Positions 1,456-55,035 of a stretch of 64,000 bases of DNA are shown one piece after another. Below the pieces are notes generated by a model. It had not been told where the DNA came from. It searched no databases and worked only from the letters and a program-made list of their open reading frames with translations. Both the position numbers and the translations under genes were made by a program. The stretch lies in sequence record NC_042116.1; one strand, written 5' to 3'. How positions within the stretch are numbered: position 1 is the first letter of the stretch; each line of letters starts with the position of its first letter.

Positions 1456-2772
1456 ATGAATACACCATATGTTGTATCAAAAGAATATGCTGATGAATGT
1501 CATGATAGAATTATAGTTGCTCGAACTTCAATGATAATGGGATGTCCATTTTTTGGAATACTTGCAGCTAGATTAAAATTAGTACCAAATAATACATGGT
1601 GCCGTACTTTAGCGGTTGATGGAAAACATTTATATTATAATGTTGAATTTATCATGGGTATTGAAGATCCATTACGCCGACAAGAATATGAAGATAAACT
1701 TAAAACTACAATTGATGATTTAACTACCGAACAAATTAAAGATGCATTGGATGGATTGAGTCATCAGAATTTAGTTGCAGCTATATGTCATGAAATTCTT
1801 CATTGTGCATATAATCATTTTTTACGCCGTGGATCTCGTAATCCAAAAAAATGGAATAAAGCTGCTGATTATGCAATTAATCAAATTATCAATCGCGATA
1901 AGAAAATGGGATTAATTAAAAAATCATGGCTATATAATTCTGATTATGAAGGTAAAGCTGCGGAAGAAATTTATAATATTTTAGAAGAACTAGGTGATAG
2001 TGATGGTGGCGGTGGTGGCACATTAGACCAACACGATATTCCACAACAGGACTCTAATGATAATGAAGATGAATCTGTTCCAAAATTTACTAAAGATGAA
2101 TTAGAATCATTTATGGATTCTTTTAAAGATGCAATGTTAAGTGCAGCTTTAGCCGATGGTGCACCTAAAGAAATTCGAGATATGATTGAAGAGTTTAAAA
2201 CTCCAACAATTGATTGGCGTTCAAAATTAAACAGAACTATCAGATCTTTGATTAAAAATGACGTATCATATATGATGCCAAGTCGTAGATCATGGAGCAC
2301 CGGATTTGGGAGTACTGGATCATATTATGGTTCTCCTATATATCCAGGATTAAAACCAGATTTAGATATTGATATATGCGTAGCATTAGATGCATCTGGT
2401 AGTATCAGTACTGAAATGTTAAAAGACTTCTTATCTGAAGTTATTGGGATGACTAAACAATTTAGTCAATTCAAAATTAGAATTCTTACTTTTGATACTT
2501 CTGTTTATACTGTACGAGATTATGTAACTGGAGAAGAAAAGAAGATTCTAGAATATCCAGTTGTCGGCGGTGGCGGCACGTTGTTTACTGCGGTATATGA
2601 TTATATGAAAAATGATAATTATTGTCCTAAGCAATTAGTTATGTTTACTGATGGTGAACCGTGGGGTTCTTGGGGAGATAGTAATTATTGTGAAACCTTA
2701 TTTGTAATTCATTCTAATCCAAAAAAAGAAGCCCCTTTCGGCACTACTGTGCATTATAATATTGGTGAATAA
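1456..2772 (+). CDS. DUF2201-type metallopeptidase-VWA protein (MoxR partner)
   Basis: HEILH zinc motif; C-terminal VWA MIDAS DASGS...GGGT...FTDG. Start 1456 follows GAGAGG. Confidence 0.85.
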   Translation: MNTPYVVSKEYADECHDRIIVARTSMIMGCPFFGILAARLKLVPNNTWCRTLAVDGKHLYYNVEFIMGIEDPLRRQEYEDKLKTTIDDLTTEQIKDALDGLSHQNLVAAICHEILHCAYNHFLRRGSRNPKKWNKAADYAINQIINRDKKMGLIKKSWLYNSDYEGKAAEEIYNILEELGDSDGGGGGTLDQHDIPQQDSNDNEDESVPKFTKDELESFMDSFKDAMLSAALADGAPKEIRDMIEEFKTPTIDWRSKLNRTIRSLIKNDVSYMMPSRRSWSTGFGSTGSYYGSPIYPGLKPDLDIDICVALDASGSISTEMLKDFLSEVIGMTKQFSQFKIRILTFDTSVYTVRDYVTGEEKKILEYPVVGGGGTLFTAVYDYMKNDNYCPKQLVMFTDGEPWGSWGDSNYCETLFVIHSNPKKEAPFGTTVHYNIGE

Positions 2773-2785
2773 CTATAATAAATAA

Positions 2786-2808
2786 AAGGTCACCATTATG
2801 GTGGCCTT
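2786..2808 (+). terminator. Intrinsic terminator
   Basis: AAGGTCACCA-TTA-TGGTGGCCTT followed by ATTCTTTT. Confidence 0.65.
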
Positions 2809-2815
2809 ATTCTTT

Positions 2816-2844
2816 TGGAACAGGCCATAATTTTATGGTATAAT
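2816..2844 (+). promoter_or_regulatory. Hybrid promoter A (TGGAAC-N17-TATAAT, extended TG)
   Basis: TGGAAC 2816-2821, TGG-TATAAT 2836-2844; same geometry at four other sites. Confidence 0.8.
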
Positions 2845-2878
2845 ATATATAATTAAAAAATACATGGAGTGTATAATT

Positions 2879-3109
2879 ATGAGTAATGAAGTTGAATTTA
2901 ACAGTGATGTTGTTGGCCCACAATTAGAATTCATTGATATTATCAATGCTACAAAAATCATGGAAGCCGCGATTGAACGTAAGGCATTTTCAATTAAAGA
3001 ATTAGGAGAAGTTGCCCCTATTGTAGCACGTTTCCAAGATTTTTCACAAGCAATTCTTGAAGAACAATCTAATTCTCCTGAGATTAAATCAGAAGGAGTT
3101 GCAGAATGA
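2879..3109 (+). CDS. Hypothetical small acidic protein
   Basis: ORF after promoter A; GGAG 2866-2869 favours ATG 2879. Confidence 0.65.
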   Translation: MSNEVEFNSDVVGPQLEFIDIINATKIMEAAIERKAFSIKELGEVAPIVARFQDFSQAILEEQSNSPEIKSEGVAE

Positions 3110-3753
3110 GTATTATTAGACATTGTGGAGTAGTTCGCAGTACTGGATCTCGTGTGTTTGTTGTTTGGCGTCAACTTGAGAATGATTCACGCCATTGTTT
3201 AGTGATTTATCGTGATTCATTACCAGAAGCTTATGTAACTAAAGTATCTGATTTAGTACTTAATCAAGGACAAAGCTCAATTGAACTTTGGGATGTTATT
3301 GATAAAATTGGTACACTTGAAGGTGCTAATATGTTAACCGTTTTACATAAAATGGGTTATATTCGTAAGCAAAGTACTTTAGATATTGATATGCATGTTG
3401 GTGGTAATAATAAAATTCCTTTGAATATTTTAAATGATGAAATTAATTCTGCACCAGAAATGGTTGCTGGAACTGTAAAAGATTTCAATCCATTTAAATC
3501 TCAAAATGTTCAATATCCAGAACAAAATACAGTAGTAACTCATCTATTAGATGATGCAAATAAGTATCAGCAATTAGCTAATGAAAGCTTTGAGCGTGCT
3601 TATAATTTAGATCCAAGTTTACGTCCTCAATCAGTTACTGGTGAAAATAAAGATGATGATTTAATTCATCTAAACATCGATCCTTCAATGTCACAAGCTA
3701 AAGCAATTGAGTTAGTTAAAAAGGCATTAAAGGAACATAAAGATGCAAAATAA
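3106..3753 (+). CDS. Hypothetical phage protein
   Basis: 215-aa ORF with ATGA overlap to the previous stop, in a co-oriented operon. Confidence 0.75.
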   Translation: MSIIRHCGVVRSTGSRVFVVWRQLENDSRHCLVIYRDSLPEAYVTKVSDLVLNQGQSSIELWDVIDKIGTLEGANMLTVLHKMGYIRKQSTLDIDMHVGGNNKIPLNILNDEINSAPEMVAGTVKDFNPFKSQNVQYPEQNTVVTHLLDDANKYQQLANESFERAYNLDPSLRPQSVTGENKDDDLIHLNIDPSMSQAKAIELVKKALKEHKDAK

Positions 3754-4051
3754 AATCACTAGGGAACAAATAATCAATTTGATTATTGAGGAACGCTTAA
3801 AACAAATGAGCAATCCAAATACCTTAGCTGACCATCTTAAAACCAAGAATGATTGGACAGGTTTAGCTGGATATTACTTATTTGAAAGTGCATCTAGACC
3901 TGATAAACATGTTTCTTTTGATGAATTTAGACTATCATTAATTAAAGCAGCAGCAGTAATACTTGCTGCTTTAGAAACAAGTTTTTCATTAGATGACAAT
4001 GATATTAAAGAATTATTATCCAAATTGGAAGATAAAAATGACACTAACTGA
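3743..4051 (+). CDS. Possible MazG-like all-alpha NTP pyrophosphatase-fold protein
   Basis: EERLKQ...NDW...LIKAAAVILAALE resembles phage MazG-like helical proteins; the acidic EExxE motif is not clear. Confidence 0.4.
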   Translation: MQNKITREQIINLIIEERLKQMSNPNTLADHLKTKNDWTGLAGYYLFESASRPDKHVSFDEFRLSLIKAAAVILAALETSFSLDDNDIKELLSKLEDKNDTN

Positions 4052-47521: not shown

Positions 47522-47534
47522 AATGGAGGCAAGA

Positions 47535-49676
47535 ATGCTATCTATAAAACGTATTTCAATGCGTAATTTCTTTTCTTTTGGTAATGCTCCACAAGTTGTG
47601 GATTTAGATAGTACTGACATATCTCTAATTTTAGGTCAAAATAATGATGCTGCACCAGGAGATGATAATTCTGGTCGCAGAAATGGAGTAGGTAAGTCAG
47701 CTATTAACCAAGCAATTGTATTTGGATTGTATGGAAAAAGTATTGGGAATGATATTAAAATTCCAAACTTAGTTAATAAAATTAACTCAAAGAATTGTGA
47801 AGTTATTATTGATTTTGAAAAAGATGGTGTAGAATATAGAATAGAACGTGGGAGATCTCCCACGTTTTTTAATTTCTATCGACTAGATGAGAATAATAAC
47901 GTATCTGATGAATCTCGTGGAGAAAAGAAAGATACACAAGAAGATCTAACCGAAATATTAGGAATATCACAGTTACTATTAGAACATATTGTTATATTGA
48001 ATGCGAGTGTAGAACCATTTTTATCACTTTCACAACAAAAACAACGTGAAATTATAGAAGAACTTCTTGGAATTACACAACTAACAGAAAAAGCAAATCT
48101 ATTAAAAGATATGTACAAAGAAACTAAACGATTAGCAGATCAAGAAAAATTCAAAATTGAAACAATAACTGAATCTAACAAACGTATAGAACAAAGTATA
48201 GAAACTTTACAATTAAGAGCTAATGAATTCGAATCTAAAAAAATAAAAACAATACAAGAATTAAATGAACATTTGGAAGATTTTAAAGATGTAGATTTCG
48301 ACCATTTATTAAAAATTGCAGAAGAAATGGCATCAGCAATTGCACATAATAATTCTCGTAGTAATCTTGAAACTAGAGTAACACAACTAGTGGCTAAGCA
48401 TGAAGAATACTCAAATTCATTACAATCAAAGAAAAATACTTTAATTAACAGTATTAATGAATTAAGTACTTTTAATATTTCATCTGAACTTAAATTGCAT
48501 GAAGATTTAGAATCATGGAATTCATTAAATCAATTATTAAAAGAAACATTGAACACTAAACGATTTAAAGAACAACAATTAAAATCGATTTCTGATAAAA
48601 TTATGTTACAGGAACGTTCATTAATAGCTGAACAACAAAAATTAGATGATATAGCAAATAGTAAATGTCCATTATGTAAAAATTCACTTCAACATGATGA
48701 AAATCATGAAAATATGAAACATAAGTCTGAAAATGAAGTTGAAAAACTACTTTCTACTATAGAAATACTAAAAAATGAACAACAAAGTACACAACTTGAA
48801 ATAAGTTCATTGGAAATTTACGAAATGCCAACTAAACCAGTTACATATTATAGTTCTGTGTCTGAAGCTAAGTTGCATGAACATAAATTAGAGGAACTAA
48901 CTAAGAAAAGTACTGAAGAAGATATTAACATTTATGATGAAGAACTTTTAACTGTATACTCTGAATTAGAAAGTACTGAAATTAAAGATGTTATTGAATG
49001 GTATAGTATTGATGAAGTGAAAGAACTTCAACATTCATATAATTCATACATTTCGTCATTAGAACGTGAATCAAATTCACAAAATCCTTATTTTGACCAA
49101 ATTGAAACACTTAAACATAACTCATTACAGTCAGTTGATTATGATGAATACAACAAATTAACAAAACTTGCTGATCATCAAGATTATTTGACTAAATTAT
49201 TGATGAATAAAGATTCATTTGTTCGTCGCCGCATCATTGAACAAAATATATCATTCTTGAACTCTAGATTGCAGTACTGGATTGATAAATCAGGTTCACA
49301 ACATACGGTTGAATTCCTAAATGACCTAAGTGTAGACATAAACCTAAATGGTCAGTCATATGATTTCAAACAATTATCTCGTGGTGAAAGAACTCGTGTA
49401 ATTCTATCATTGAATTTAGCATTTCGTGACACATATGAGTCATTGTACCAAAATATTAACATTATGTTTGTTGATGAATTACTAGACAATGGTCTAGATA
49501 GTGGTGGTATAGAAAGTGCATGGCATATGTTACAAGATTTGAGTGCAGTTAGAGGAAAAAACATCTTCGTAGTATCACATCGTGAAGAATTAGTCAATAG
49601 AGCTAATTCCATATTACGAGTAGTTAAAGAAGATAGCTTTAGTACTGTAGAGTACTGTGATGTACTTGATTTATAA
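47535..49676 (+). CDS. gp46: Recombination ATPase subunit (gp46 / Rad50-SbcC-like)
   Basis: NGVGKS Walker A, coiled coil with CPLC hook, LSRGE signature, MFVDE Walker B, VVSH. Start after GGAGG. Confidence 0.92.
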   Translation: MLSIKRISMRNFFSFGNAPQVVDLDSTDISLILGQNNDAAPGDDNSGRRNGVGKSAINQAIVFGLYGKSIGNDIKIPNLVNKINSKNCEVIIDFEKDGVEYRIERGRSPTFFNFYRLDENNNVSDESRGEKKDTQEDLTEILGISQLLLEHIVILNASVEPFLSLSQQKQREIIEELLGITQLTEKANLLKDMYKETKRLADQEKFKIETITESNKRIEQSIETLQLRANEFESKKIKTIQELNEHLEDFKDVDFDHLLKIAEEMASAIAHNNSRSNLETRVTQLVAKHEEYSNSLQSKKNTLINSINELSTFNISSELKLHEDLESWNSLNQLLKETLNTKRFKEQQLKSISDKIMLQERSLIAEQQKLDDIANSKCPLCKNSLQHDENHENMKHKSENEVEKLLSTIEILKNEQQSTQLEISSLEIYEMPTKPVTYYSSVSEAKLHEHKLEELTKKSTEEDINIYDEELLTVYSELESTEIKDVIEWYSIDEVKELQHSYNSYISSLERESNSQNPYFDQIETLKHNSLQSVDYDEYNKLTKLADHQDYLTKLLMNKDSFVRRRIIEQNISFLNSRLQYWIDKSGSQHTVEFLNDLSVDINLNGQSYDFKQLSRGERTRVILSLNLAFRDTYESLYQNINIMFVDELLDNGLDSGGIESAWHMLQDLSAVRGKNIFVVSHREELVNRANSILRVVKEDSFSTVEYCDVLDL

Positions 49677-49677
49677 C

Positions 49678-49705
49678 AAAAAGGAGCCATTAGGCTCCTT
49701 TTTTT
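49678..49705. terminator. Bidirectional terminator
   Basis: AAAAAGGAGCC-ATTA-GGCTCCTTTTTTT. Confidence 0.8.
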
Positions 49706-50184
49706 ATTTGTGTCATGTCTAAATCACCAGATTTGATCAGTTTTCTTGCTTGATTCGCTCTCTTGGCTGTGTTAGACTCTGGTACTACATTAAATGATTC
49801 TAAAATAGAACATTGTTGAGCAGAGGGCAATGATTTGAACTTTCTAACATCAACAGTTAATGCAGTATGGTGTATAACTTGTTCATCTTCTGGTATATTA
49901 TTATTTTTTTCTAAGTAATCAGCCAATTTTCTTAATACTTCATGAATAGGCTTGTCGGTTAAATGCCCCAAACAGCGTTTAAATGAGTTTACAACTCGAC
50001 CTTCCCACCCGTTAACTTCATTTTGTAATACTTCACGGCAATGCTGATTGTCGGCATGAAGATGGTCTAAAACAGGTTTTGTTATAGGAATACCAATAAT
50101 AGGATCTATACCTTTTTGTTTTTTTAACAATTCGTTGCGATATACTGCTGCTTCTTTTGAATTTTTTAATCTTTGTCGTTTCAT
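49690..50184 (-). CDS. Recombination endonuclease VII (gp49-like)
   Basis: QKGIDPI...VLDHLH...CREVL...NGWEG...LADYLE. Start MKRQR (50184) with GAGGT. Confidence 0.75.
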   Translation of the reverse strand: MKRQRLKNSKEAAVYRNELLKKQKGIDPIIGIPITKPVLDHLHADNQHCREVLQNEVNGWEGRVVNSFKRCLGHLTDKPIHEVLRKLADYLEKNNNIPEDEQVIHHTALTVDVRKFKSLPSAQQCSILESFNVVPESNTAKRANQARKLIKSGDLDMTQIKKGA

Positions 50185-50934: not shown

Positions 50935-51741
50935 ATGAATATTAATTTAATGAATGGTAATTGTATTGATCTAATGAAGAATATTCCTGATAATTCAATA
51001 AATTTAGTTCTTACAGATCCTCCTTATGGAACAACTGCCTGTTCATGGGATATTGTAATTCCATTTGAAGATATGTGGAATGAATTGAATAGAATAATAG
51101 CACCATGCGGTTCTATTTGCTTATTTGGTTCAGAACCATTTAGTTCTTTATTGCGAGTAAGTAATATGAATGCATTTAAATATGATTGGATATGGTCTAA
51201 AAATAAAGGAACTGGTCATTTAAATGCTAAAAAAATGCCTATGAAATATCATGAAATTGTTTCAGTATTCTCTAATACTCCAATAACATACTATCCTCAA
51301 ATGACTGAAGGGCATAATCCTATGAATTATGCAAAAAATAAGCAAAATAATATAAATTCAAGTCATGGAAGTGTTGTAAATAATGCAGGAAGTACCTTAC
51401 GAAATCCAAGATCTATACTTGAATATAAAACCGTCAATAATGATGGAAGTACCGATGGTGGTAGATTTCACCCATCACAGAAACCAGTATCATTATTGGA
51501 ATATTTTATAGAAACTTATACTAAAGAAAATGATACAGTATTAGATTTTACAATGGGTAGTGGTAGTACTGGAATTGCAAGTGTAAACTTGGGAAGAAAT
51601 TTTATTGGTATTGAAATGGACGAAAATTATTTTAAAATAGCAACTGACCGCATTAATAATGCAATAGATATTAAAAGTAGTAATACTGTGGATTGTGATG
51701 ACAAAAAATCAACTGATGAACCTGATTTTTTTGAATGGTAA
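50935..51741 (+). CDS. Beta-class DNA amino-methyltransferase (probably N6-adenine)
   Basis: Motif IV DPPY precedes motif I LDFTMGSGSTG; HPSQKPVSLLEYFI. Confidence 0.9.
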   Translation: MNINLMNGNCIDLMKNIPDNSINLVLTDPPYGTTACSWDIVIPFEDMWNELNRIIAPCGSICLFGSEPFSSLLRVSNMNAFKYDWIWSKNKGTGHLNAKKMPMKYHEIVSVFSNTPITYYPQMTEGHNPMNYAKNKQNNINSSHGSVVNNAGSTLRNPRSILEYKTVNNDGSTDGGRFHPSQKPVSLLEYFIETYTKENDTVLDFTMGSGSTGIASVNLGRNFIGIEMDENYFKIATDRINNAIDIKSSNTVDCDDKKSTDEPDFFEW

Positions 51742-51767
51742 AAAAAGCCGCTAAAAGCGGCTTTTTT
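51741..51767. terminator. Bidirectional terminator
   Basis: AAAAAAGCCGC-TAAAA-GCGGCTTTTTT. Confidence 0.85.
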
Positions 51768-51771
51768 GTTA

Positions 51772-51948
51772 TTATTTTTTGTTTTCACGTTTGATCTTTT
51801 TATTATATTGCTTCACCATCAAATCTTTGTCATTGACTGGCATATTCAATAGCATTTCATATGAAGTATTAGGTATATGAACTGCTACTTCCATTAAAGA
51901 GTTTTTAATTTCTTCACAATTGAACCGCAAATCAGATATTTCCTTCAT
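51772..51948 (-). CDS. Small gp51-like hub assembly / tail chaperone ORF (58 aa, absent from the ORF track)
   Basis: MKEISDLRFNCEEIKNSLMEVAVHIPNTSYEMLLNMPVNDKDLMVKQYNKKIKRENKK; TAATG overlap with the gp26-like stop; frame open back to a slippery site. Confidence 0.7.
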   Translation of the reverse strand: MKEISDLRFNCEEIKNSLMEVAVHIPNTSYEMLLNMPVNDKDLMVKQYNKKIKRENKK

Positions 51949-52823
51949 TACTTCGTCTGGTTCTGAGATGAGAAGCTTGATACGAAAAAACTGCTTGGAT
52001 CAAATTGAAGATTTTCTAATTTCCATTCATGTCCACATTTAGAACATCCCACATCCATTTCATGAGTTACTCCAACATTATTAATATAATCAGATTTTTC
52101 ACGAATTTGTTTTAAAATAAATGCTGGTTGTTTTCCTAACCAATCGTTAATAAATTCTCTTTCAGTAACTACAATTTGGTCTACAGTTTCAATAGATTCA
52201 ATATTTGCAACTATCATATCAAAACTTAATTGAGTCATACTTTCAAATACTGAAGTAAACTGTTTAATTTTATCATCATCAGATAAATCAGCTCCTTCCA
52301 ATAATTGAGCTTTCTTTTGCTCTTGAAACATTTTAAGCCCAAACTCTGAATGTTCTTTCCATGTATGAGGCTTAAATTTCAACATTAATCCACCAACATC
52401 TTCAAGTACTAACGTAGGTTGTTCTTCTATAAGTTCAGCACTATCAATTAAGTACTGCAAATTCCTTTCAAATGCCCCATGATGATCACATTCTGGACAA
52501 TTTACTTCTATTTGATATTCTGTTTCTTTTGTGGCTAGTTTAATTCCTATTAAAAGTAATTCAACATCAGGAACAAACAATTCACGAGCATTTGCTATAT
52601 TTGGTACACAATTCTGAATAACATTAACTACTGCTTCACCATTCATAAGTGCATCAGGATTGTTAAACATCAATTCATCTCGTGCCGACCGTGCACAAAT
52701 ACCACATTCTACTGTATTATTAACTAACACACCAGCAGGGTATTTTATTACATCATTACTTACTAATTTTGTATATAAAGTTTCTACTTTAGTATACTTT
52801 GATAAAGGGTTCATTTGATTCAT
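51948..52823 (-). CDS. Baseplate hub assembly protein (gp26-like)
   Basis: NPLSKY, ARDELMFNNPDALMNGEA, DVELLLIGIKLAT, CPEC and CSKC, FDPSSFF; late-like CATAAATA at 52869-52876. Confidence 0.75.
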   Translation of the reverse strand: MNQMNPLSKYTKVETLYTKLVSNDVIKYPAGVLVNNTVECGICARSARDELMFNNPDALMNGEAVVNVIQNCVPNIANARELFVPDVELLLIGIKLATKETEYQIEVNCPECDHHGAFERNLQYLIDSAELIEEQPTLVLEDVGGLMLKFKPHTWKEHSEFGLKMFQEQKKAQLLEGADLSDDDKIKQFTSVFESMTQLSFDMIVANIESIETVDQIVVTEREFINDWLGKQPAFILKQIREKSDYINNVGVTHEMDVGCSKCGHEWKLENLQFDPSSFFVSSFSSQNQTK

Positions 52824-52887
52824 ACTGACTCCATAATAAATACGTCTATACTATATTTTGTATAGAGTTATTTATGAGGGAAAATAC

Positions 52888-55035
52888 ATGGCAGGACTTA
52901 GCTCAGATTACATCTTACAATCGATTTTGGATCAAAATGTTACTGCAAATGATAATTTATCTGCAATGCGTGAACTTCTTTCAAGTATCAATAAAGGTGT
53001 AAAAAATGGTAGTGGTTCTGGTGATTCATCAGGATCTGGTAGTGGAAATAATAATAGAAGACCACCACCAAAGAAAGATAGTAATGCATTTGGAAAAGCA
53101 TTTAAAGATTTATTTGGAGAAGCTAAAAATATTGGTGGTACTGTTCTTGGTAATAATGGTTCTATTCAAAACACGGTAGGTGCAGTATCTACATCAGCAA
53201 AAACACTACAATCATCATTAGGAAAATTACCAGGTCCAATTGGATTAGCTGCTAATGCATTTTTATCAATAATTCAAGTTGGTGGAATGGTTTATGACTA
53301 TTTGAATGACCAATTGAATATGTACAATCAACTTAATAGTGCAGGACTATCATTAGCTGATGGTATGTTAACTGTACGTAAAGGTGCATCAGGTGCATTT
53401 TTAAGTATTAATGAATATTCAAAAGTATTAGAGAAAAACAGTGATGCTATTGCTGCAATGGATGGACAGTATGGCGATGGTGTTGAACACTTTGGTAAAT
53501 TACTAAATACCGTCCAACTAACACAAGAAAAAATTGGATTATATGGAGTATCCCAGCAACAATTAGCAGATATTGCTGCAAAGAATTTCAAATTTGAAAA
53601 AATGTATTCAGGTCAATCACAATTGCGTAGTATGACTGAATCTCAAAGTACTGAAAAATTTGTCGGTACTATGACATACTTAAGTAAGACTGTTGGTAAA
53701 AGTGTAGATGAATTAATCACTAAGTTTAGTGATATGAGTCAAAACCTTGATACTGGTTTATCACAAGATGCGTTGATGACTTATTATGGATTAACTGAAG
53801 ATAAAGCATCACAAGTTACCAAAAGTATGAACTCAATATTTGCAAGTATGGGTGAAGCTGGTTCTCAATTACAAAAATTAAATGCTAGTAAATTACAAAC
53901 TGGTGCATTACCAGAAGAATTCAATAACCAATTTACTCAAATGTATACTGATAGGATAACACAGTTACAAGCTGCTGGAATAACTGATGAAAAACAACTT
54001 CGTCGTGCTATGTCGAAGTATGTTAAGGATCATAAAAAACAGTTAGATGATGAAATACGTTATCAGAATCTAGCAGGGAATACTACTGCATCAGCATGGT
54101 TAAACCAACTTAGAAATATTGAAAACACATTGAATGATCCTAAAAATCAACCAAGTCCAATAATTGAAAATTTCACTAATAGATTTAACTTATGGATAGG
54201 AAAAACATTCACTGAACCATTCAATGCATTTTATGCAAAAACTGCCGAAGGTGCAGTACAGTACTTGTCGGATTTAGCAGATAGAAGTACTGACTCATGG
54301 GATTTCATGGCTAATTTAGTTTCTGATGCATTTACTAAGTTTGATGCAGGTATGCTTGGGCCATTTGGTGCGTTAATAGAACTTCCAAAAAAATTAATGA
54401 ATATAATTTTTGGAGATTCATGGAATAAAGTCACTGATGCTTTTACTAATTTAGGTGGAGATCTTGTACAAATTCCAGTACGTATTGGTAAATTAATATG
54501 GGAAATGTTCACTGGTTCCAGTGATGAAGTAGACCAAGCAGGGAAAGAATTAGCGGGGTCAATAAAAAGAGTATTTGCATCAGTAGGTAATGCTTTTGAT
54601 AATATAACTAAGTTAGATATTAATATGGATGATGTTAAAAATAAATTTTTAGATGCATTTAATTCATTAAAAAGTAAATTATCATCAGTATGGAGCAAAA
54701 TGAAATCTTGGTGGAGTGATGCAGATGATTCACCATCTGATAAATCTAAACCTGAAACTAAAAAACCACCTACACCAATAGCAAATCAACCAAAAACATC
54801 AGGACAACAAAAAGTAACTTCTCCCGCAGAATATACTAAACCTGAACAGATAGAACAATCAGAACCACCTTCAATGACAGAGGTTCAAACAGCACAGAAT
54901 AGTACTACAGATCCTACAAATAAGATACTTTCTGCAATACTAAATAACTTAGAAAGTCAAGGACAGGCAAACAGTCAAGCCGCGATTATTTTAAGACAGA
55001 TTGCTGATAATACAGAACCTGCTCGAAATGTATAA
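52888..55035 (+). CDS. Tape measure protein (gp29-like)
   Basis: Ala/Gly/Ser/Lys-rich helical protein just before the portal. Start MAGLS after GAGGG; late-like AATAAATA at 52835-52842. Confidence 0.65.
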   Translation: MAGLSSDYILQSILDQNVTANDNLSAMRELLSSINKGVKNGSGSGDSSGSGSGNNNRRPPPKKDSNAFGKAFKDLFGEAKNIGGTVLGNNGSIQNTVGAVSTSAKTLQSSLGKLPGPIGLAANAFLSIIQVGGMVYDYLNDQLNMYNQLNSAGLSLADGMLTVRKGASGAFLSINEYSKVLEKNSDAIAAMDGQYGDGVEHFGKLLNTVQLTQEKIGLYGVSQQQLADIAAKNFKFEKMYSGQSQLRSMTESQSTEKFVGTMTYLSKTVGKSVDELITKFSDMSQNLDTGLSQDALMTYYGLTEDKASQVTKSMNSIFASMGEAGSQLQKLNASKLQTGALPEEFNNQFTQMYTDRITQLQAAGITDEKQLRRAMSKYVKDHKKQLDDEIRYQNLAGNTTASAWLNQLRNIENTLNDPKNQPSPIIENFTNRFNLWIGKTFTEPFNAFYAKTAEGAVQYLSDLADRSTDSWDFMANLVSDAFTKFDAGMLGPFGALIELPKKLMNIIFGDSWNKVTDAFTNLGGDLVQIPVRIGKLIWEMFTGSSDEVDQAGKELAGSIKRVFASVGNAFDNITKLDINMDDVKNKFLDAFNSLKSKLSSVWSKMKSWWSDADDSPSDKSKPETKKPPTPIANQPKTSGQQKVTSPAEYTKPEQIEQSEPPSMTEVQTAQNSTTDPTNKILSAILNNLESQGQANSQAAIILRQIADNTEPARNV

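Follow-up and report, generated by a model that had tools for sequence, protein, structure and literature searches.

A programmed -1 ribosomal frameshift in the gp26-like gene of the Yersinia jumbo phage fHe-Yen9-04 very probably gives rise to two proteins, a short form and a C-terminally extended long form. This reading rests on a slippery site whose position, phase and conservation can be observed directly; the occurrence of the shift, its efficiency and the chaperone role of the products are inferred. The DNA analysed here (the window) is a stretch of 64,000 nucleotides with 32% GC from NC_042116.1, the record of fHe-Yen9-04. An earlier note on this DNA had proposed that a -1 shift at T TTT TTC extends the gp26-like protein into a small downstream ORF, a proposal that is now supported by comparison with other phages, with the product itself still unobserved. 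Long-tailed phages characteristically have a conserved -1 frameshift in their tail assembly chaperone genes, and Xu, Hendrix and Duda are said to have described such a conserved shift in the tail assembly genes of dsDNA phages in 2004. To our knowledge, the T4 superfamily has so far been considered to lack a tail assembly chaperone frameshift. In the literature searched, which did not extend to paywalled texts, we found no prior report of a gp26 frameshift, which is not proof of absence, and no report of protein, ribosome-profiling or reporter evidence for any member of the group.

The slippery site and its reading frames

The features of the locus are collected in Table 1. The zero frame of the 291-aa ORF reads the heptamer as xxT TTT TTC, and the minus-strand sequence and its three-frame translation agree with the earlier note. 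Six T's at 51990-51985 are followed by C at 51984, and the -1 frame runs open for 75 codons from 51999 into the 58-aa ORF and ends at the stop 51774-51772. The heptamer is an X XXY YYZ sequence in phase with the upstream ORF, and both tRNAs would be able to re-pair in the -1 frame. The proposed C-terminal extension consists of the 70 codons that follow the two Phe codons of the -1 frame. In the zero frame, translation would end 11 sense codons past the heptamer at a TAA (51950-51948), which overlaps the ATG of the 58-aa ORF (51948) to form the TAATG that had also been pointed out.

Table 1 Features of the gp26-like locus, with positions in the window
Feature	Position	Strand	Remarks
Hairpin, G+C-rich, flanked by A and T runs	51741..51767		12-pair stem, from consensus scan
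58-aa ORF g242c (stop included)	51772..51948	-	Distal part of the proposed -1 extension; phrog_18291, E 4e-36
-1 frame, heptamer to last sense codon	51775..51990	-	72 codons, stop 51772-51774
gp26-like baseplate-hub assembly chaperone gene, zero frame	51948..52823	-	291 aa, RefSeq g243c; proposed short product
Bridge, heptamer to small-ORF ATG	51949..51983	-	Dual-coded with the non-conserved zero-frame tail
Slippery heptamer T TTT TTC	51984..51990	-	X XXY YYZ phase; codons 279-280, Phe-Phe
-1-frame TGA	52000..52002	-	Upstream bound of the open -1 window, three codons before the heptamer
g244, divergent neighbour	52888..55035	+	Virion structural protein; candidate tape-measure or hub protein

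The possibility of a chance heptamer is not negligible, as ORFs of at least 120 aa in the window hold 123 in-phase XXXYYYZ heptamers. A -1 frame open for at least 60 codons follows two of these 123, one being the gp26-like site. The other heptamer, A AAA AAA, is found where the endonuclease VII gene ends; its -1 frame lies antisense to a gp46-like gene and was set aside as chance. The gp26-like site is judged to be more than chance because of the comparative evidence, which we regard as decisive.

Conservation of the site in related phages

The loci of relatives were surveyed with single-protein queries. All 35 distinct non-cyanophage genes and 80 of 80 cyanophage-like contigs from IMG/VR have an in-phase slippery heptamer where the gp26 domain ends; this count leaves aside the T-even group and two odd records (IME-SM1 and Bacillus phage HSE3). 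The -1 frame is open for 59-97 codons in every one of the counted genes and contigs; neither loss of the heptamer nor a stop in the -1 bridge, either of which would have refuted the proposal according to the earlier note, was encountered among them. Conservation of the heptamer reaches down to about 25% protein identity. For example, 14 Rak2-like jumbo phages carry T TTT TTC in phase with a -1 frame open for 72-85 codons, and T TTT TTC or T TTT TTT is present at ~25% identity in Phosso, Atu_ph07, PA5oct, SCTP-2, XacN1, CM1 and RsoM2USA. An in-phase site with an open -1 frame also occurs in cyanophage S-BM1, phiM7, Aeromonas phage 65 and the KVP40-like phage ValKK3. Some relatives have longer runs (T7 in phiM7, XacN1 and CM1; T9 in RsoM2USA). 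Among four distant metagenomic loci, three have T TTT TTC and the fourth (L120) has another in-phase heptamer, A AAT TTT. The two misfit records differ in frame: IME-SM1 has T5 and its extension in the +1 frame, and the extension domain of HSE3 likewise lies in the +1 frame, with its own ATG.

The nucleotides of the site are more constant than the protein would require. Every distinct gene uses NNT TTT TTY (34/34 and 78/78), where codon usage predicts about 0.08, and the codon before Phe-Phe always ends in T, despite encoding eight different amino acids. C occupies position 7 of the heptamer in 108 of 112 genes. Past the site, the zero frame stops within 1-15 codons among the relatives, and its tail varies in both length and sequence. 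The -1 peptide immediately after the site, encoded by the bridge, is conserved in the Rak2-like phages; the three codon positions of the -1 frame have column entropies of 0.77, 0.63 and 1.13, indicating third-position variation in that frame, and all four CGN codons are used among relatives for the Arg that follows the site. Homologous -1 extensions could be aligned in 22 phages. No in-frame fusion was seen in the 97 homologues (all 276-313 aa) retrieved from 5.8 billion proteins, and no in-frame fused jumbo-type homologue was found in 1.84 billion representatives.

The gp26-like protein, its extension and T4 gp51

The gp26-like protein of the window is 100% identical to fHe-Yen9-04 g243c and matches PF12322 T4_baseplate significantly (E 6e-23, 82 bits against a cut-off of 24.5 bits) over profile positions 36-218 of 219. 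The end of the profile (218/219) falls at residue 280, that is, at the heptamer. The protein also matches phrog_150 'baseplate hub' (E 9e-30), and a BFVD search with its predicted fold gave 'baseplate hub assembly' proteins. The AlphaFold model of g243c has a pLDDT of 88.7, which drops below 50 for the final 10 residues of the zero frame. The extension is less readily named. It is predicted to form three helices (pLDDT 82.8), and an ORF of the g242c type adjoins a gp26-like gene in 74 phage records. The earlier note had labelled the 58-aa ORF 'gp51-like'; this holds only by an indirect link to gp51, since there is no direct Pfam or PHROG match to T4 gp51, and g242c matches only phrog_18291, of unknown function.

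The indirect link passes through the T4-like phages. T4 gp51 also belongs to the PF12322 family (E 7.7e-55; T4 gp26 scores E 8.8e-64 against the same profile) and is made up of a PF12322 domain (residues 1-201) and an in-frame tail of ~48 aa. This tail and the -1 extensions of ValKK3, S-BM1, phage 65 and phiM7 share phrog_634 (E 1e-12 to 4e-31), annotated as 'baseplate hub assembly catalyst'. The domains of T4 gp51 are thus arranged as one would predict for the long form, and its tail is collinear with the -1 extensions. The fHe-Yen9-04 extension has low identity to the T4 gp51 tail; aligned with the T4-like extensions and that tail, it gives a moderate hhalign result (probability 47%, E 1.9e-4). 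Homology of the extension to the gp51 tail can therefore be considered shown for the T4-like relatives and, judging from sequence, likely for fHe-Yen9-04.

The two lineages differ in how the proteins would be encoded. The zero-frame product of fHe-Yen9-04 is a gp26 homologue of the PF12322 family, as is T4 gp26. However, the two T4 proteins come from separate paralogues, which lie on opposite strands and have no slippery site, whereas fHe-Yen9-04 has one gene and a proposed recoding event. The gp26 genes of T4 and other T-even phages have neither the heptamer (they read TTC TTT or G TTT TTT) nor an open -1 frame. The T-even phages can be seen as a natural control, in which the signal is absent and a separate gp51 gene is present. 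PMC3004832 lists T4 gp26 and gp51 as chaperones of hub assembly, with gp51 absent from the particle, and still calls their roles in that process unclear. Sullivan et al. (2010) noted that ~200 N-terminal residues are missing from the 'gp51' of cyanophages and vibriophages (PMC3037559); such a 'truncated gp51' is what would be expected of a gp26 frameshift extension.

Alternative explanations

The small ORF might be translated only on its own, by termination-reinitiation or coupling at TAATG, giving two separate proteins and leaving the heptamer as a by-product of Phe-Phe. The earlier note had kept re-initiation as an alternative, and the stop-start overlap is indeed present in fHe-Yen9-04 and BF. 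As a general mechanism it fails, as RaK2, Munch, A4, EJP2, XaC1, Vibrio phage and many cyanophage loci have no start at this position, and the first ATG of the cyanophage set falls anywhere between codon 5 and codon 35; a conserved start codon near the upstream stop is thus not found, the start being absent or displaced in most relatives. RefSeq does list a separate CDS with a weak ribosome-binding site, gene callers everywhere annotate short stand-alone ORFs, and the extension domain of Bacillus phage HSE3 is apparently a gene of its own. However, the -1 peptide is conserved upstream of any start, with third-position variation, and even the 20-nt 'gap' of CBB and GAP32 is open and conserved in the -1 frame. 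Phe-Phe alone does not account for NNT TTT TTY in 112/112 genes, nor for the lack of a heptamer in T4, where the same dipeptide is encoded as TTC TTT. That separate translation is all that happens is thus highly improbable. In addition to frameshifting, g242c may also be translated separately from its own ATG, which the TAATG of fHe-Yen9-04 would allow.

Two further explanations do without a ribosomal shift. RNA polymerase could add one U within the T6 run, so that the frames are fused in some of the mRNAs. The protein product would be indistinguishable from that of ribosomal frameshifting, no RNA stimulator is established, and the site is a homopolymer run that reaches T7 or T9 in some relatives. 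Efficient polymerase slippage typically needs 9 or more T's, and six are short for it. Locus L120, with its ribosomal-type A AAT TTT, has only five T's, and the strict X XXY YYZ phase and the prevalence of C at position 7 (108/112) fit the rules of tRNA re-pairing (PMC4066793). Slippage during transcription is thus considered improbable. Alternatively, the true ORF could be continuous, and T6 could reflect either faulty sequencing of a homopolymer or a hypermutable contingency tract by which the fusion is turned on and off in the population. Homopolymers are error-prone, IME-SM1 has T5, and a 2025 bioRxiv preprint reportedly proposes phage contingency loci at homopolymers. This last explanation is scarcely credible, as the unfused arrangement recurs in over 110 genomes and metagenome contigs that were obtained independently, by many laboratories and on many platforms; the zero-frame stop is kept close behind the site in all of them, and the fused state is absent from 5.8 billion proteins.

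Proposed mechanism

Under the preferred reading, a programmed -1 ribosomal frameshift, most ribosomes would stay in the zero frame and produce the 291-aa short form, a complete PF12322 domain with a short, unconserved and presumably disordered tail. A fraction would shift at T TTT TTC. The P-site and A-site codons, UUU and UUC, would each hold a tRNA-Phe, and the two tRNAs could slip back one base onto UUU UUU and re-pair perfectly. Reading in the -1 frame would then continue for 70 codons to the stop at 51772, yielding a long form of ~350 aa with the predicted three-helix C-terminal extension. By analogy with T4 gp26/gp51 and lambda G/GT, both forms probably cooperate in assembly of the baseplate hub and tape-measure complex, at a ratio that would be set by the efficiency of the shift. 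U_UU.U_UU.C is a frameshift-prone motif in E. coli and is among the heptamers used by IS elements (PMC4066793). The virion mass spectrometry table of phage CBB contains neither CBB_250 nor CBB_249 (PMC5259590), an absence that is expected of non-virion chaperones.

Stimulatory elements are harder to find. RNAalifold predicted no conserved downstream RNA structure on 16 aligned Rak2-like sequences, and no SD-like element upstream of the site was noticed on reading the sequence, without a scan. The 80 nt downstream of the fHe-Yen9-04 site fold no better than shuffled sequences (z +0.64), so a low efficiency of shifting may be possible in this phage. For most relatives, single-sequence folding predicts a hairpin that starts 6-9 nt past the site, a suggestive result, with strong examples in Atu_ph07 (z -7.8) and ValKK3 (z -4.6). 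A 5-bp CUUCU/AGAAG stem proposed by hand is paired in 81%, but shuffles do equally well and there is no covariation.

Comparison with known frameshift systems

Lambda G/GT shares several traits with the gp26-like locus. Both have a first ORF that carries X XXY YYZ in phase near its end and is overlapped by a second ORF in the -1 frame, with short and extended products (proposed, in the case of the gp26-like gene). In both, the arrangement is conserved far beyond sequence similarity, and the lambda G/GT products and T4 gp26 and gp51 alike are assembly chaperones rather than virion parts (T4: PMC3004832). Bacillus phage HSE3 has its PF12322 gene and then the small ORF exactly where G/GT would lie, preceded by the sheath gene and then the tube gene, and followed by the annotated tape measure gene. 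In phiM7 and ValKK3 the gp26-like gene follows a tube-like gene and precedes a 570-660-aa protein of unknown family.

The differences are equally clear. Lambda G has about 140 aa, whereas the gp26-like protein has about 280 aa, belongs to PF12322 and carries zinc-ribbon-like Cys pairs; the lambda slippery site is G GGA AAG, unlike T TTT TTC. The fHe-Yen9-04 gene is divergent from its tape-measure-like neighbour rather than upstream of it, as lambda G/GT is, and the function of gp26 in T4 is tied to the baseplate hub. The gp26-like protein does not belong to a known tail-assembly-chaperone sequence family, as PF12322 is the only Pfam match and no Phage_TAC family was hit. A profile search of the PDB gave no solved-structure relative at E <=1, and the best Foldseek match in the PDB had E 0.25 and TM <0.2. 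Fold kinship with known tail assembly chaperones was dropped after these searches, and the gp26-like gene is not filed as a member of the G/GT family because it has no fold or profile relative in the PDB. The earlier suggestion that gp26 and gp51 are G/GT equivalents thus stands for the organisation, helped by gp51 being a PF12322 protein with a homologous in-frame tail, and does not stand for fold or family; the likeness is one of organisation and probable role.

Among other bacterial systems, the orfA-orfAB genes of the IS3 and IS1 families and E. coli dnaX use the same class of -1 tandem-slippage signal. Their stimulators are documented, be it a pseudoknot, a hairpin or an SD-like element upstream, whereas none is established in the gp26-like gene. 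The dnaX shift also leads to a shorter product, unlike the longer one proposed here.

Implications

A broader reading can be put forward, with moderate confidence: in most T4-like phages and jumbo myoviruses, the gp26- and gp51-type hub chaperones are the short and long products of one gene, made by a -1 frameshift at T TTT TTY as a counterpart of lambda G/GT, and the two genes of T4 are a special state of the T-even phages. This one-gene reading covers cyanophages, KVP40-like vibriophages, Aeromonas phage 65 and phiM7, as well as Rak2-, PA5oct-, Atu_ph07- and XacN1-like jumbo phages. If the signal works as inferred, the locus is mis-annotated in hundreds of phage genomes, which list a 'hypothetical' or 'gp51' mini-ORF standing alone or, as in RaK2, no ORF at all, and the 'truncated gp51' of marine T4-like phages (PMC3037559) is accounted for. 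gp26 and gp51 would be one functional pair with a fixed expression ratio, providing a testable model for how the hub and tape-measure complex assembles in the contractile tails of the superfamily. T TTT TTC would also rank among the most widely conserved frameshift sites of bacterial viruses, in hosts from 31 to about 50% GC, and could be useful to frameshift-prediction tools.

Surroundings of the locus

The tape measure gene had been taken to be the divergent neighbour of the gp26-like gene. g244 is indeed adjacent and divergent, and it matches phrog_14121 'virion structural protein' (E 0); its identity as a tape measure has only weak support (phrog_167 'tape measure', E 1.5e-5). It has no PDB relative, and PHROG and PDB searches on the tape-measure identity of large neighbouring or downstream proteins gave only weak matches or matches of unknown function. 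The RaK2 record notes a similarity of the g244 counterpart to tape measure protein. The CBB orthologue of g244 was detected in virions with 29 peptides (PMC5259590).

On the other side of the locus, the hairpin at 51741-51767 is the sole terminator-like site that a consensus scan found in 51500-53100. It looks like a bidirectional intrinsic terminator that closes the gp26 transcription unit just past the -1-frame stop. Similar hairpins are found 3' of the small ORF in CBB, GAP32 and BF.

A slippery site at the end of the gp26-like gene

Comparative sequence evidence strongly supports a programmed -1 frameshift near the end of the gp26-like gene of Yersinia phage fHe-Yen9-04, as the earlier note had proposed, although this remains unproven at the protein level. 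No earlier description of a gp26 frameshift was found in the literature searched. This jumbo myovirus, with a genome of 354 kb, belongs to the genus Eneladusvirus and the Rak2/GAP32/121Q group; its g243c product has 100% identity to the gp26-like protein of the window (window coordinate = record coordinate - 124000). The heptamer, its phase, the TGA in the -1 frame, the open -1 frame and the zero-frame stop, all read from the sequence in that note, are present in the sequence and its three frames. In the zero frame of the 291-aa ORF the site reads xxT TTT TTC, with codons 279-280 encoding Phe-Phe, and a stop follows 11 sense codons past the heptamer. The -1 frame, after its TGA, holds 75 open codons that run across the 58-aa ORF g242c.

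Gene order and frame features around the gp26-like gene
Feature	Coordinates	Strand	Remark
gp46-like recombination nuclease subunit gene	47523-49676	+	first in local order
-1 ORF after endonuclease VII A AAA AAA	49352-49690	-	117 open codons
A AAA AAA in endonuclease VII gene	about 49690-49710	-	in phase
Endonuclease VII gene		-	
N6/N4 DNA methyltransferase gene	50935-51741	+	
Terminator-like hairpin	51741-51767		12-pair stem, flanking A run and T run
58-aa ORF g242c		-	between hairpin and g243c
-1 frame stop	51774-51772	-	
gp26-like gene g243c	51948-52823	-	
Zero-frame TAA	51950-51948	-	
Heptamer C	51984	-	
Heptamer six T's	51990-51985	-	
-1 frame TGA	52002-52000	-	
g244, 715-aa virion structural protein gene		+	divergent from g243c
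T4-type portal gene		+	after g244

In a single AT-rich genome, the heptamer by itself carries little weight as evidence. Across the window, 123 in-phase XXXYYYZ heptamers occur in ORFs of at least 120 aa, and just two precede at least 60 open -1 codons, the gp26 site being one. The other, A AAA AAA, comes four codons ahead of the endonuclease VII stop codon. Without a comparison of relatives, it was judged a chance occurrence because the -1 ORF that follows it is antisense to the gp46-like gene.

Conservation in jumbo phages

The locus was compared across 14 Rak2-like jumbo phages (Yen9-04, BF, CBB, GAP32, Kaldavass, XbC2, RaK2, Munch, A4, 121Q, EJP2, fEgEco12, XaC1 and Vibrio phage 2.275.O), which share 32-100% identity with the query in the gp26-like protein. 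T TTT TTC is found in all 14, in the same phase and at codon 276-280, and all 14 have a -1 frame open for 72-85 codons. The alignment suggested in the earlier note as a check thus finds both features kept, here and in more distant relatives. The zero frame stops 1 to 13 codons past the site. In CBB and GAP32, for instance, the stop comes 4 codons on, and the 20-nt 'intergenic gap' that separates it from the annotated small ORF is open and conserved in the -1 frame. The small-ORF ATG of Yen9-04 is unconserved, with no Met at that position in RaK2, Munch, A4, EJP2, XaC1 and the Vibrio phage; in the RaK2 record the small ORF is wholly unannotated. Even where the ATG is missing, the -1-frame residues right after the two Phe codons are conserved, namely an Arg, a Leu-Leu pair and an acidic Glu-Glu-Ile/Val patch. 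Column entropy in the bridge between the heptamer and the ATG (51949-51983, -) is 0.77, 0.63 and 1.13 at the three -1-frame codon positions. All four CGN codons are used for the bridge Arg, a variation that is silent in the -1 frame and residue-changing in the zero frame. The Leu-Leu pair, 8 nt past the heptamer (window 51970-51976, -, or 3848-3854 of the Yen9-04 locus L001; 16 relatives), is almost always CTT CTN. Synonymous variation there is far below expectation for Leu, a hint, from sequence alone, that the nucleotides shortly after the shift site are under a constraint of undefined nature.

At about 25% protein identity, T TTT TTC recurs in Phosso, Atu_ph07, PA5oct and SCTP-2, T TTT TTT is found in XacN1 and CM1, and RsoM2USA has a T9 run. 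In these distant jumbo relatives the zero frame stops 1-12 codons on, the +1 frame closes quickly and the -1 frame offers 78-91 open codons.

Slippage, homopolymer effects and separate genes

A mere effect of the homopolymer can be weighed against ribosomal slippage using four divergent metagenomic homologues that were chosen blind to their DNA. Three carry T TTT TTC; the fourth has A AAT TTT in phase before the same kind of -1 extension, and this replacement of the T run favors slippage. It is also the only one of 97 homologues, retrieved from 5.8 billion proteins, whose protein does not end soon after Phe-Phe, the other 96 ending 1-15 residues past it. No in-frame fusion was found among the 97, all of which are 276-313 aa. 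Searching the -1 window alone against 1.84 billion representatives gave free-standing mini-ORFs of 51-67 aa, with varied start positions, and again no fusion; the one other match, of 2783 aa, had no aligned stretch and was treated as spurious. As no in-frame fusion was found, the phages appear to need both the short and the long product and to keep the two frames unfused.

The signal is also present in true T4-like phages, namely cyanophage S-BM1, Sinorhizobium phage phiM7, Aeromonas phage 65 and the KVP40-like ValKK3. It occurs in 80/80 IMG/VR cyanophage-like contigs (50-76% identical to S-BM1 gp26), each with a zero-frame stop exactly one codon past the site and a -1 frame open for 62-70 codons. 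Codon choice was counted in 34 distinct non-cyanophage genes with a C-terminal Phe-Phe and in 78 distinct cyanophage genes. In the former the preceding codon always ends in T (34/34), despite comprising 10 different codons for 8 amino acids. For the Phe pair itself, TTT comes first in 34/34, followed by TTC in 30 and by TTT in 4. All 78 cyanophage genes have NNT TTT TTC. From gene-wide codon usage, a combination of the NNT TTT TTY type would be expected in about 8% of genes.

Two phages depart from the pattern. Stenotrophomonas phage IME-SM1 (L039, 1858-2030) has five T's rather than six and a conserved extension in the +1 frame, its annotated 280-aa CDS continuing into unconserved sequence; the T5 may reflect either genuine variation or an error in assembling the homopolymer. 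Bacillus phage vB_BceM-HSE3 (L034, 1102-2029) has Phe-Phe-Arg in the zero frame and no heptamer; its extension-like domain lies in the +1 frame and has a separate ATG. The phage may represent a lineage in which the two parts turned into separate genes.

Mechanism

At the site, tRNA-Phe would re-pair perfectly on moving from UUU-UUC to UUU-UUU. U_UU.U_UU.C, a motif that occurs in IS elements, is among the heptamers that shift at >0.1% in E. coli without a stimulator, and H_HH.U_UU.Y heptamers are among the most efficient with one (Sharma et al. 2014, PMC4066793). An RNA stimulator has not been established here. No consensus structure was found downstream of the site, nor covariation in the single recurrent short stem. 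Hairpins starting 6-9 nt past the site are predicted in most relatives (z -7.8 in Atu_ph07, -4.6 in ValKK3); the focal phage fold is unremarkable (z +0.64).

Relationship to T4 gp26 and gp51 and to lambda G/GT

The gp26 genes of T4 and other T-even phages end soon after a Phe-Phe coded TTC TTT (or G TTT TTT). These genes lack an in-phase heptamer, and not until 10 nt before the stop does their -1 frame become open, leading into gene 25. T4 gene 51 lies divergently upstream. Its 249-aa product matches PF12322 over residues 1-201 (E 7.7e-55; gp26, E 8.8e-64) and phrog_150 end to end, identifying gp51 as a paralogue of gp26 that carries about 48 additional residues at its C-terminus. This tail (E 7e-11) and the ValKK3, S-BM1, phage 65 and phiM7 extensions (1e-12 to 4e-31) match one and the same region of phrog_634 ('baseplate hub assembly catalyst') and align collinearly from the Phe-Phe position. 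In this sense the label 'gp51-like' in the earlier note is supported; the jumbo-phage extensions are more distant (hhalign against the T4-like set, probability 47%, E 1.9e-4; against gp51 alone, E 0.001). Given this homology, T4 encodes as two genes the short and long forms for which other lineages would use one gene and a frame shift. The gp51 of cyanophages and marine vibriophages has been noted, without explanation, to be only about 20% of the T4 length and to lack the first ~200 residues (Sullivan et al. 2010, PMC3037559). Both gp26 and gp51 are listed as hub assembly chaperones, gp51 being needed for assembly but absent from the particle (Leiman et al. 2010, PMC3004832).

The analogy drawn earlier with lambda G/GT holds for organization. 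As in lambda, an assembly chaperone outside the virion would come in a short form and in a long form extended in the -1 frame, an arrangement conserved far past sequence similarity. HSE3 even places its PF12322 gene (E 1.3e-22) and small ORF in a G/GT-like slot, in the order sheath, tube, PF12322 gene, small ORF, tape measure. However, gp26 does not qualify as a member of the G/GT family, since it is tied to known tail assembly chaperones by neither its sequence nor its fold. That the divergent neighbour g244 is the tape measure gene is only weakly supported.

Predicted proteins and annotation

The zero-frame protein is predicted with confidence (pLDDT 88.7, pTM 0.85), except for the last 10 residues past the site. 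No PDB relative of this fold was found; it is common among myovirus 'baseplate hub assembly' proteins in BFVD. The -1 extension is predicted to form three helices (pLDDT 82.8), without a PDB match. PF12322 T4_baseplate is the only family match of the g243c product (E 6e-23), so its RefSeq name, 'Lead, cadmium, zinc and mercury transporting ATPase; Copper-translocating P-type ATPase', is by this match a mis-annotation. Some metagenome sources name homologues 'ribosomal protein S27E', presumably from Cys-pair zinc-ribbon motifs. The hairpin between the convergent methyltransferase gene and small ORF resembles an intrinsic terminator that would act in both directions. In the BF, CBB and GAP32 records (L002-L004, about 2560-3350), ~800 nt matching the Yen9-04 methyltransferase position have no annotated CDS. 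Escherichia phage CMSTMSU (L013, an UNVERIFIED_ORG record) has its gp26-like gene annotated as two overlapping CDSs, implying one frame break. In T4 record KJ477684.1 (L035), gene 51 is unannotated and its 249-aa ORF is intact (716-1465, -).
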